Part shown: in pieces, positions 12,901-15,900 of the stretch | How the letters are laid out: every line of letters starts with the position of its first letter | Position numbering within the stretch: the first letter of the stretch is position 1 | Source of the DNA: Octopus sinensis | Lineage: Eukaryota | Length of the DNA: 64,000 nt | NCBI RefSeq assembly: GCF_006345805.1 | Contig: NC_042998.1 | Coordinates: 100,130,001 to 100,194,000 of the forward strand | Direction of reading: 5' to 3' | Position numbers and translations under genes: made by a program | The notes under the pieces: model-generated | Databases searched by the model: none | The model's input: the letters and a program-made list of their open reading frames with translations, nothing else | What the model was told of the DNA's origin: nothing

Positions 12901-15900
12901 ATGACTACTCAATAATAAATTGGTAATAGCATCAAGTTCTATTTGGCCATTGAAGTTGTATATTTTCTGATAAACTACAGTGAAAGTGCCTGATGAAAAT
13001 AAAATATCTCACTGTATGCAAAGTTATAGGTCCATGAGCAGCACATCCTGAATCTCCTTTACTTTTTTAATACCTTCCCACCTGAAACTACCCGTTTCTA
13101 TGTTACAATACCTCCTGTTATTTATAGTTAAGGTAACACTTCCCATGATTTTGTGTAAGAACTTCTATGTTCTAAACACCAATTTAAAAATGACGTAATT
13201 AGTTATTTTACTGAATCACACTAAATTCTTAATTATTTTCAAAACTGATTGAAAGTAATGACATTGTACTTCATTAGAAATTTGGTCATCCAAGGGTTAA
13301 ATGTTGTCGCTATCCTTTGTCTTGTGGACTGTGCCATTATTTTCCTCCCTGAAGACATAGTGACCACTGACTTACCTGTCACTTATAGTCCAACAACGGT
13401 TAATATCATATCTTCACACACAAATTGTTCTTTCAGATAAGGCTAATACGATCAAAACCTAAATGTTCAGCCTTCAACTCCACATTTAAAGAAAGCCATC
13501 AGGTGTACTATAATTACCAAACAAATGTGCATAATGATTCTCCTGAGAAACCCAATGTTAAGCAATTTACCTGCTTCCTTGTGGACTCTCCATTGATCCT
13601 TAAGGTAATAACTGTTTTTACATTGTCTATTCTTTTTCATATGTTCCCACCTCCTTGGATTGGCATGCATAGATTAAGCTGGTTCTGACTAGTCCTGCCT
13701 CCACAGAGTTCAAGTATTCATATGAAGATTCTTACAATATATTCAAACAATACCAGATGACCATTCATAAAGAAAAAGCGTCTTCATGTACAAAACGTGA
13801 CTTTGGAGATTTCTTAGTGAATTCCCCATTTGAGGTAGCAGTAAGATCTTTTTTCTAGTCTTCAAACAGCTTTGCTATTGATCCACCGTTCAATACTGTT
13901 CAGATTGTGTGTGAATGTGATTTACTCAGTATGCCTAAATATGAATACGACTGTTTTTACTTGGGTTAAATCATCTCACTTTACATTTCTGTATAAGATA
14001 TTGATTGCTTCATCTTGAACAATGTTTTCTTGCTCATCTTTTCTCATAACTAGTGCTAAGTTGCTTTCATTTGCATAGTGGTTTCATTTCATTGTTGTTG
14101 TCATTGTTGATTACCAGGTGAGCCTTGATTAAGTAGCCTTTTGGTTAAATCCATTCTAGCCATGACTATTCTGCCTTTCTCTTGTATCAAGGAACCCACT
14201 GCCATATTTTCCAGCATGCCTTTTCTAATATTGTAGGGTGTAGTTTAAGAGAGATTTGGTTGTTATTTTTTTTTTTCTAGTAGCTTGAGCAACCACATGG
14301 AGGCTTCTTTATTAGCTTGACTTAATCTAGCAACAATGTAATGTGGCTTTAAAATTTTCTCAGGCTTTCACTGTGTTGCTTGCAGTTTCAGATTTAGCTT
14401 CATGTTCTAAATCCTTTTGATAAGTTTTATCTTGCTTTAGGTTGGTGGATTGCCAAAAAAAAAAAAAAAGAAAAAAAAAAATCCATTCATTTTCCTTTTT
14501 CACTTTGTGGTCTCTTTAAAACATTTCAGAATTACTTATTTTAATGCTTTCCAAATTGACCCAATGAGGAATCTATGCAATAATTCAACCCACAAAAAAT
14601 AGCAATCAAATCTTCCTCAAATCACACTTTACTGTTTTAAAACCAGGACATATTAAATATATTCTCGATACACTGTACTTGGGGAAGAAAGTGGGACCAT
14701 CTTGGTAGCAACACTTTTGCTTTCAGCTTTTGCTGACCAAAAGCTAAACAATAACAGTATGTTCTGCATTAAGTAGGGAGCGAGAGAATTGTGCTTATCT
14801 TTAAAACAAACTTTACTATTCCAATTTTATTTTTTTAATAAATTGATTTGGGAGAAGACACTGTAGCCATGGTTTTCATAGTCCCCTTGAAATAAATTGT
14901 TTTTGAACTGCTGCAGTAACATCAGTCAAAAAGGGAATTCCAGAGGGATAACATTTTTGAGGAGGAAAATATTACGCCTAGGAATTTGTGGATTTTTTTA
15001 ATGTCAGGAGGCAAACATGAGTGATGAGAGAAGAGTCGGATGAAGGCCCACACCAGACTAACCAACTCCAAAGAGCAGAAGCTACTGTAGTAGCTGTGGA
15101 AAAAATGACATGGTTGTGTGCTTGTGGTCTTTTTCTGGATGTAGTCTGATATCCATTTGTGCAGTAACACCATTCAAGTTGTGGAAGTAGTATTTCATTC
15201 TGGGTTTCACTTATGAGCTAAAATATTTTCTGACCTTGAAGAGAATTGCTAGCCTTTGTATTATTGAAATCATGTGACTATCAAGAGAAATAATTAGTAA
15301 TTGTGAAGACTGCCTTTTTGTCTTGGCTTCACTTTCATCATTCAAGTTCTTCAAATATCTTAAAATTGTTTGAAATGAATTCCTTCAAATGCCTAGAAGG
15401 CTCCTTAAAAGTAGTTGTTGCCTAGGTAACTTATTCAATAGTAGAGATAGATGAGAGTAAGAACAAGGGGAATATGTTCAAGGAACAATTGCTTCTACTG
15501 GTAACAAAGAACTTCTCTCTCCAATTGATGGGTTAACTGAATAGTCCTTATGTATGAAATGTGATATTGCATGATGACAAAACCTGGTCATTGAAGTTTG
15601 TGTGTGTGTAGAGGATGTACGAAAGTCAGGAAGAAATGAGGCAAGCAAAGCTTCACTGAATATGCAGTAATAGCATTAATAAACAATGAAGAACAAATGA
15701 GCTGGGAAAAAATGGGTACAAGAGGAATTGGCTGTAGTGTAGAAGAGAAGTGACCGTTGGTATGGACATGTGATGTGTGAAGAAAATAACAGTTGGGTAA
15801 AAAATGTCAAGCAATCAAGTGGAAGAAGACAGAAGATAGGAAGAAATGATGATGGTTGCTCTTAGCCTGCTGAATCAAGGGGCCACAACAAGTATTAAGA

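Follow-up and report, generated by a model that had tools for sequence, protein, structure and literature searches.

The 64,000-nucleotide (nt) stretch of the Octopus sinensis genome considered here (contig NC_042998.1, positions 100,130,001 to 100,194,000 of the forward strand; hereafter the window, with positions counted from its first letter) carries on its + strand most of ATE1, the gene for arginyl-tRNA-protein transferase of Octopus sinensis/vulgaris, as ten GT-AG exons that form a single frame running to the stop codon (Table 1). An original prediction, made from the letters alone, had named both the gene and an octopus-like source, and Pfam domains and identity to RefSeq proteins bear this out. 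ATE_N (PF04376) scores 73.7 bits against a Pfam cut-off of 27, ATE_C (PF04377) scores 147-150 bits against a cut-off of 25, and the octopus model matches the human ATE1 structure 8tzv with E = 1.6e-69 over 180 amino acids (aa). The first coding exon, known from RefSeq isoform X1 (MAEFSIVEYF...CGYC...), was sought in the window by its CGYC motif and not found; it therefore lies upstream, and the 5' end of the gene is missing from the window (window 1-3871). Between the constitutive exons lie two adjacent exons, A and B, which are two alternative versions of the exon that codes for the opening ~54-56 residues of ATE_C, the catalytic domain. Their sequence, use, origin and mutual exclusivity are the subject of this work.

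Table 1. Features of the ATE1 gene in the window
Feature	Positions	Strand	Basis or remark
ATE1 coding exon	3872..3935	+	first ATE1 exon in the window; exact match to RefSeq X1
ATE1 exon, remainder of ATE_N and linker	6543..6847	+	exon model and Pfam domain search
ATE1 linker exon	9997..10136	+	exon model
Constitutive exon, C-terminal residues ...AHKLE; donor common to A and B	12333..12422	+	agrees with RefSeq isoforms
Alternative exon A, upstream copy type, 168 nt	13437..13604	+	in RefSeq X1 and X4; assigned by hidden Markov model
Spacer between A and B, 68 nt: A donor gtaata, pyrimidine tract with conserved ctttttcat, B acceptor catag	13605..13672	+	shortness proposed to preclude splicing of A to B
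Alternative exon B, downstream copy type	13673..13840	+	3' end 13834 in RefSeq X3 and 13837 in X2; 13840 unannotated
Constitutive exon (...SAL); acceptor common to A and B	17794..17975	+	agrees with RefSeq isoforms
ATE1 exon (...PKMRYK)	18980..19079	+	exon model
ATE1 exon; preceded by the gene's shortest constitutive intron, 109 nt	19189..19306	+	exon model
Last ATE1 coding exon, stop codon included	20759..20937	+	exon model

Exon A (cag/ATAAGG...CTTAAG/gtaata) and exon B, which opens with tag/ATTAAG, are both stop-free and in phase 0. Aligned without gaps, they share 14/56 residues and 76/168 nucleotides; the BLOSUM62 score of 82 compares with a shuffle mean of -45 (z = 8.3) and was reached by none of 100,000 shuffles, and the nucleotide identity by none of 20,000. 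Third codon positions are saturated, with 15/56 identical, and the duplication is therefore old. Each exon matches Pfam ATE_C positions 1-36, and the domain is covered over 1-122/122 with A or with B, versus 34-122 without either, in agreement with the earlier claim that either exon alone completes the enzyme. A search of the window for a third copy, using hidden Markov models (HMMs) of both copy types, found none.

RefSeq annotation already contains both forms of the protein. A homologue search with the 448-aa B model gave as its top match "arginyl-tRNA--protein transferase 1 isoform X2" of O. sinensis, in a cluster that holds isoforms X1-X4 of O. sinensis (X1, XP_029650742.1; X2, XP_029650750.1; X3, XP_029650759.1; X4, XP_036354553.1) and X1-X4 of O. 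bimaculoides (XP_014778651.1 to XP_014778654.1); X1 has also been deposited for O. vulgaris. Exactly one of the two exons is found in each of these eight isoforms, and both or neither in none of them (0/8). The O. bimaculoides enzyme departs from the window at two residues, and exons A and B are identical at the protein level in the two species. Among the O. sinensis proteins, X1 (478 aa) is identical to the A model, and X4 (447 aa) also contains A. X3 (476 aa) is identical to the B model when B ends at 13834 (...SPFE), and X2 (477 aa) contains B with a ...SPFEV end that would need a GC donor at 13837/13838. Inclusion of A would thus yield X1 and X4 and inclusion of B would yield X2 and X3, giving two enzymes that differ solely in this segment. 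X4 begins at a Met within the first ATE1 exon of the window and may therefore come from an alternative promoter or first exon.

The end of exon B deserves separate comment, as three candidate donors stand there in tandem (window 13829-13846, GAG/GTA/GCA/GTAAGA). The original prediction had chosen the third, arriving at two 168-nt phase-0 exons, each with its own AG and GT. That donor, 13840/13841 (GCA/gtaaga), is used by no annotated isoform, and it makes B 6 nt longer than in X3 and 3 nt longer than in X2. X3 places the donor at 13834/13835 (GAG/gtagca), for an exon of 162 nt; in a cephalopod relative, represented by contig L003, GAG/gtagta is the sole candidate donor at the end of B, and the transcripts of relatives end B with ...SPLE. 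Given the X3 end and the single donor in the relative, B most likely measures 162 nt and ends at 13834, rather than measuring 168 nt. The remainder of the predicted structure holds: the 168-nt length of A, the ungapped 14/56 identity, the start of B, both open frames, both acceptors and the A donor. Of the predicted junctions, 12422>13437 and 13604>17794 occur in RefSeq X1 and 12422>13673 in X3.

Both exons also appear to be maintained. The contig of the related cephalopod has the same arrangement, with an A of 168 nt and a spacer of 49 nt. Comparison of the window with this one relative, a check on selection that the original prediction had proposed, gives 35/56 identical residues and a ratio of nonsynonymous to synonymous substitution rates (dN/dS) of 0.20 for A, and 39/56 identical residues and a ratio of 0.08 for B. 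Because synonymous sites are saturated in this comparison, neither copy is decaying, and both A and B are, judged by these ratios, under purifying selection. In full-length assembled transcripts of related cephalopods (P0348, P0220 and P0221), ...AHKLE is joined to B and B (...SPLE) to the next exon; the B of P0348 is identical to that of L003, that of P0220 is one residue off, and P0221 represents a second related cephalopod. Exon A is contained in isoform X3 of Argonauta hians. Beyond cephalopods, Pecten maximus (X1/X2), Mya arenaria (X2/X1) and Crassostrea gigas (X1/X2) each have one isoform of A type and one of B type, distinguished by precisely this segment. Annotated isoforms and assembled transcripts, as distinct from read counts, thus indicate that a transcript takes either A or B; rare transcripts that contain both exons, or skip both, may nevertheless occur, and would count against a strict choice.

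Set against this picture is the possibility that one exon is an unused duplicate in decay, or that the two are usually included together. The two copies are indeed fused in 32 automated annotations, including RefSeq models for Penaeus and Tachypleus. However, A and B are intact and under apparent purifying selection, they are protein-identical in O. sinensis and O. bimaculoides, each stands alone in RefSeq isoforms and B stands alone in the assembled transcripts of a relative, and the eight-member octopus cluster has no fused model, so that we regard this explanation as extremely improbable. Fused ATE1 models, of which many lie outside RefSeq and few within it, are ~54 residues too long and are best treated as errors until shown otherwise. 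The expectation that gene finders would drop or fuse the exons accordingly proves false for the octopus RefSeq models and true of many others, namely the 32 fused predictions. The models for Penaeus chinensis X2 (P0260) and Tachypleus tridentatus X3 (P0318), which hold both copies in tandem, are either annotation errors or true double inclusion with a long spacer.

Two short sequences that flank exon A are shared by octopus and L003, a distant cephalopod relative. The 16 nt immediately 5' of A (caaattgttctttcag, window 13421-13436, L003 266-281) are identical in the two despite saturated synonymous sites, as is the donor region after A (gtaataactg, window 13605-13615, L003 450-460). These sequences may be regulatory splice signals.

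Vertebrate ATE1 reportedly contains mutually exclusive exons 7a and 7b, in an account attributed to Kwon and colleagues in 1999, and in mammals both the activity of the enzyme, which tags proteins for degradation, and its localisation depend on the exon chosen. The vertebrate and octopus pairs agree in gene, in position after ...HKLE, in copy order, in HMM orthology, in lengths divisible by 3 and in phase 0. The original prediction had located the duplicated octopus exons where mammals have their alternative exon 7, and they do fall there, since both pairs follow ...HKLE and cover ATE_C positions 1-36. An exhaustive profile search with exon A, together with a full-length search, was used to survey the pair, which is present in molluscs, crustaceans, insects, chelicerates and vertebrates. 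Among 142 full-length ATE1 proteins that were classified, 75 have the A type only, 32 have the B type only, 32 have both fused in the order A then B, three have both with an ambiguous second copy, and none has B followed by A.

Correspondence between the individual copies was examined with copy-1 and copy-2 HMMs trained on species that are neither vertebrates nor cephalopods, the score being the copy-1 minus the copy-2 value in bits. Octopus A scores +28, the A of L003 scores +22 and the upstream exons of vertebrates lie between +13 and +26; B is negative in both cephalopods (-12 in octopus, -8 in L003), as are the downstream exons of vertebrates at -4 to -21. When 39 copies are placed in a neighbour-joining tree, all leaves but one group by type. 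Moreover, a copy-1 motif, VY.KYQ...P[ED]KP...Q, and a copy-2 motif, LF.KYQM.[IV]H.E...[ED]C, recur across phyla, and the copy-1 motif, like the copy-2 detail LFAKYQMA[VI]H..[ED]C, extends from bird to insects and molluscs. These comparisons point to A as the counterpart of the upstream vertebrate copy of alternative exon 7 and to B as that of the downstream copy, with support that is moderate because the sequences are short.

A single tandem exon duplication that predated the split of protostomes and deuterostomes would account for A and B, and we consider it highly probable that the either/or exons of ATE1 arose in this way, with vertebrate 7a and 7b as their counterparts. Published datings agree. 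PMC8373072 (Martinez-Gomez et al. 2021) cites "ATE1 (in common octopus...)" in dating the event to Bilateria, and a supplementary table of PMC9741552 (2022) likewise dates the human ATE1 event to Bilateria. Three observations weigh against a single origin. The unit differs in size (162-168 nt versus 129 nt), which needs extra steps if there was one duplication. The locus of the sea cucumber Apostichopus japonicus (L008) holds one copy only within 8 kilobases (kb). Lastly, the tree rests on 43 residues, and in 128 of 200 bootstraps it has 0-2 misplaced leaves.

These same observations lend themselves to another explanation, in which the protostome and vertebrate pairs are independent tandem duplications at one spot and the resemblance between copies is convergent. 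The duplicated unit would then be core plus tail (162-168 nt) in protostomes and core only (129 nt) in vertebrates, and the sea cucumber, with its single copy and an intron at the core/tail boundary, would fit such a history. PMC9741552 includes ATE1 in a group of twelve genes or families for which events of this kind are recorded in vertebrates, flies and nematodes, describing the recurrence as convergent evolution, and PMC7797038 (Kalinina et al. 2020) states that exon 7b has no homolog in invertebrates. The latter statement is contradicted by the present data. Independent duplication is, moreover, difficult to reconcile with the cross-phylum HMMs, which place all the tested upstream copies with copy 1 and all the downstream ones with copy 2, with motif details specific to each copy that extend from bird to insects and molluscs, with the absence of reversed copy order among the fused proteins, and with the Bilateria dating in PMC8373072 and the PMC9741552 table referred to above; we judge it improbable. 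The single Apostichopus copy (L008 5123-5747) is intermediate between the two types, scoring 71 bits against A and 67 bits against B.

If the pair arose once, as favoured here, its exons have nonetheless come to be laid out differently. At the ATE1 locus of a bird (L001), two exons of 129 nt each (10007-10135 and 11170-11298) lie 1034 nt apart and are followed by a 33-nt exon (FTRFLCDSPLE) and then by a 183-nt exon, an arrangement that the original prediction had described for mammals and that is seen directly in this locus. Either octopus exon corresponds to the vertebrate alternative exon plus the 33-nt exon (162 nt), with cephalopod A being two codons longer; the vertebrate 7a/7b unit thus measures 129 nt and has a shared 33-nt exon, whereas in octopus the unit, with its own tail, measures 162-168 nt. 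The tail, F/Y-x-x-F-L-x-x-S-P-L, lies inside each copy in every protostome with both copies that was examined. What the original prediction had presented as a peculiarity of the octopus, the F..FL..SP segment within each duplicated unit, is thus a real difference from vertebrates and yet no novelty of cephalopods, as it occurs in all the two-copy protostomes examined. A third gene layout is found in Apostichopus, where the core exon ends with ...SVAQ, an intron stands at the boundary of core and tail, and the tail shares an exon with the segment after it. An intron at this boundary was present in all the deuterostomes inspected (vertebrates and Apostichopus).

The 129/129/33 layout is therefore a trait of vertebrates, not a requirement for the pair. 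The vertebrate tail, FTRFLCDSPLE, is nearer to the tail of protostome copy 1 ([YF]TRFL[VC]DSPL) and to the single-copy forms than to that of copy 2 (F.[DE]FLV.SPL), a resemblance that cannot decide which layout is ancestral because it extends over eleven residues only. In several vertebrates (bird L001 11299-11337, also P0083 and P0087), the intron just past the donor of the downstream exon reads V-Q-F-T-A-C.... This sequence, which is faintly like the tail (Q)FTRFLC, could be either a vestige of a tail since lost or an element conserved for splicing.

How the choice between A and B might be enforced is a separate question from how the pair arose. Because the lengths of A and B are multiples of 3, double inclusion and skipping are both in frame, and nonsense-mediated decay thus cannot enforce exclusivity. 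The spacer offers a candidate device, as it measures 68 nt against 109-3953 nt for the other nine introns of the octopus gene. Steric interference has been given the criterion of a donor-to-branch-point distance of less than 50 base pairs (Hatje et al. 2017, PMC5740500). With a spacer of 68 nt, a branch point at least 18 nt upstream of the B acceptor is at most 50 nt from the A donor, and the conserved ctttttcat in the spacer supplies a candidate branch adenosine at 13639, 34 nt from the A donor. On this geometry, A would not be spliceable to B, as a B branch point at a usual position would lie too near the A donor, and we lean slightly towards such a steric mechanism in octopus. Smith and Nadal-Ginard are said to have mapped the branch point of alpha-tropomyosin exons 2/3 in 1989 and to have manipulated the distance experimentally. 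The proposed octopus case would resemble these exons, and the steric class of PMC5740500, in having an upstream donor less than 50 nt from the downstream branch point region, but for alpha-tropomyosin there are a mapped branch point and experiment, and for octopus geometry only.

Short spacers recur outside the octopus. In the cephalopod relative L003 the spacer, as noted, is 49 nt, and in two further loci, L010 and L011, it is 30 nt (gtaattaatgtaacttgtgtcatttatcag) and 54 nt, respectively; all three run from GT to AG. A tiny spacer is not, however, universal among invertebrates, an idea that was considered and rejected on account of arthropod spacers of ~0.8-4.1 kb (~1.4 kb in Blattella, ~0.8 kb in Halocaridina and ~4.1 kb in Uloborus). 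Several points speak against steric enforcement by the spacer. Arthropods retain the pair although their spacers measure 0.8-4 kb, so that its retention does not require a short one; L010 and L011 were found through open frames that cross the spacer, a route that favours short spacers; and some animals do splice introns of 60-70 nt.

The last of these points, that a 68-nt intron can be spliced in some animals, and the retention of the pair by arthropods despite long spacers also favour a different view, in which the octopus exons are kept exclusive by competing RNA base pairing of the mammalian R1/R4-R3 type, or by trans-acting factors, and the short spacer is incidental. Competing pairing of this type is the proven mechanism in human ATE1 (PMC7797038); a system of this kind has similar selectors upstream of the two exons, both of them complementary to one docking site. 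No such arrangement was found in octopus. The regions directly upstream of A and of B are dissimilar to each other, and a search of 12423-17793 for docking and selector inverted repeats returned only AT-rich pairs, 70-85% complementary and none adjoining the splice sites of A or B, which were treated as chance, though the search may have overlooked weak or long-range pairing. The spacers of four species showed no RNA structure beyond that of shuffled sequence (z from -1.1 to +1.4), and in a relative the downstream intron is ~250 nt, leaving little room for conserved long-range pairing. Pairing or trans-acting factors as the octopus mechanism therefore seem to us rather unlikely. The vertebrate spacer of ~1 kb with its competing R1/R4-R3 pairing thus contrasts with an octopus spacer of 68 nt and no detectable pairing.

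The exon pair as such is already known in octopus, from RefSeq isoforms for two species and from its mention as evidence of bilaterian origin in PMC8373072. The view of the original prediction that nothing of the kind had been described in cephalopods was accordingly mistaken, as RefSeq lists isoforms of both kinds in O. sinensis and O. bimaculoides and PMC8373072 names the pair in common octopus. Being annotated and cited already, the octopus pair adds no new case. The catalogue of PMC8373072 and PMC9741552 treats octopus ATE1 exons as equivalent to the human pair and dates them to Bilateria, as is done here, and its accessible text gives no coordinates, exon boundaries, spacer lengths or mechanism for the octopus pair. 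Beyond PMC8373072, the literature searched yielded nothing that links arginyltransferase with octopus, and nothing on a steric mechanism in invertebrate ATE1. The possibly new part is modest: a spacer of 30-68 nt, in cephalopods and in the L010 and L011 animals, as a likely steric device, and its contrast with the mechanism and layout of vertebrates.

Taken together, these elements suggest a joint reading, offered tentatively as plausible though short of probable, in which spacers of 30-68 nt enforce exclusivity in cephalopods and in the L010 and L011 animals, as against a 1-kb spacer with competing RNA in vertebrates, and in which core plus tail is the ancestral layout and 129+129+33 arose from it through gain of an intron and loss of the tail of the upstream copy. 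If this is true, one mechanism of enforcement would have given way to another, while the pair persisted for more than 500 million years. The claim of PMC7797038 concerning exon 7b would at the same time be corrected. The comparative value of the octopus locus lies in contradicting the notion of an exon 7b without an invertebrate homolog and in making the vertebrate layout one of at least two for the same ancient pair, and it provides a natural contrast in exclusivity between the very short spacer of cephalopods and the competing RNA pairing of vertebrates.

A few further features of the sequences were recorded. Within the window, three open frames (2775-3524 on the + strand, 885-1424 on the - strand and 46814-47164 on the + strand) share the motif SIRHLPYSERL.SLG...LKLR.LA.DLV..HK(I/V)INH; one of them has a match to the reverse transcriptase domain RVT_1 that fails the Pfam cut-off (E = 0.0056). 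They are probably fragments of a repeated retrotransposon, and two of them lie in or near ATE1 introns. A Ser/Gln/Pro-rich open frame of 495 codons (43836-45320, - strand) has no Pfam match and probably represents a large exon belonging to an adjacent gene. Upstream of ATE1 in another invertebrate (L009 4262-7950, - strand), tandem frames alternate between ~300-327 and 77 codons, with no Pfam match on record.

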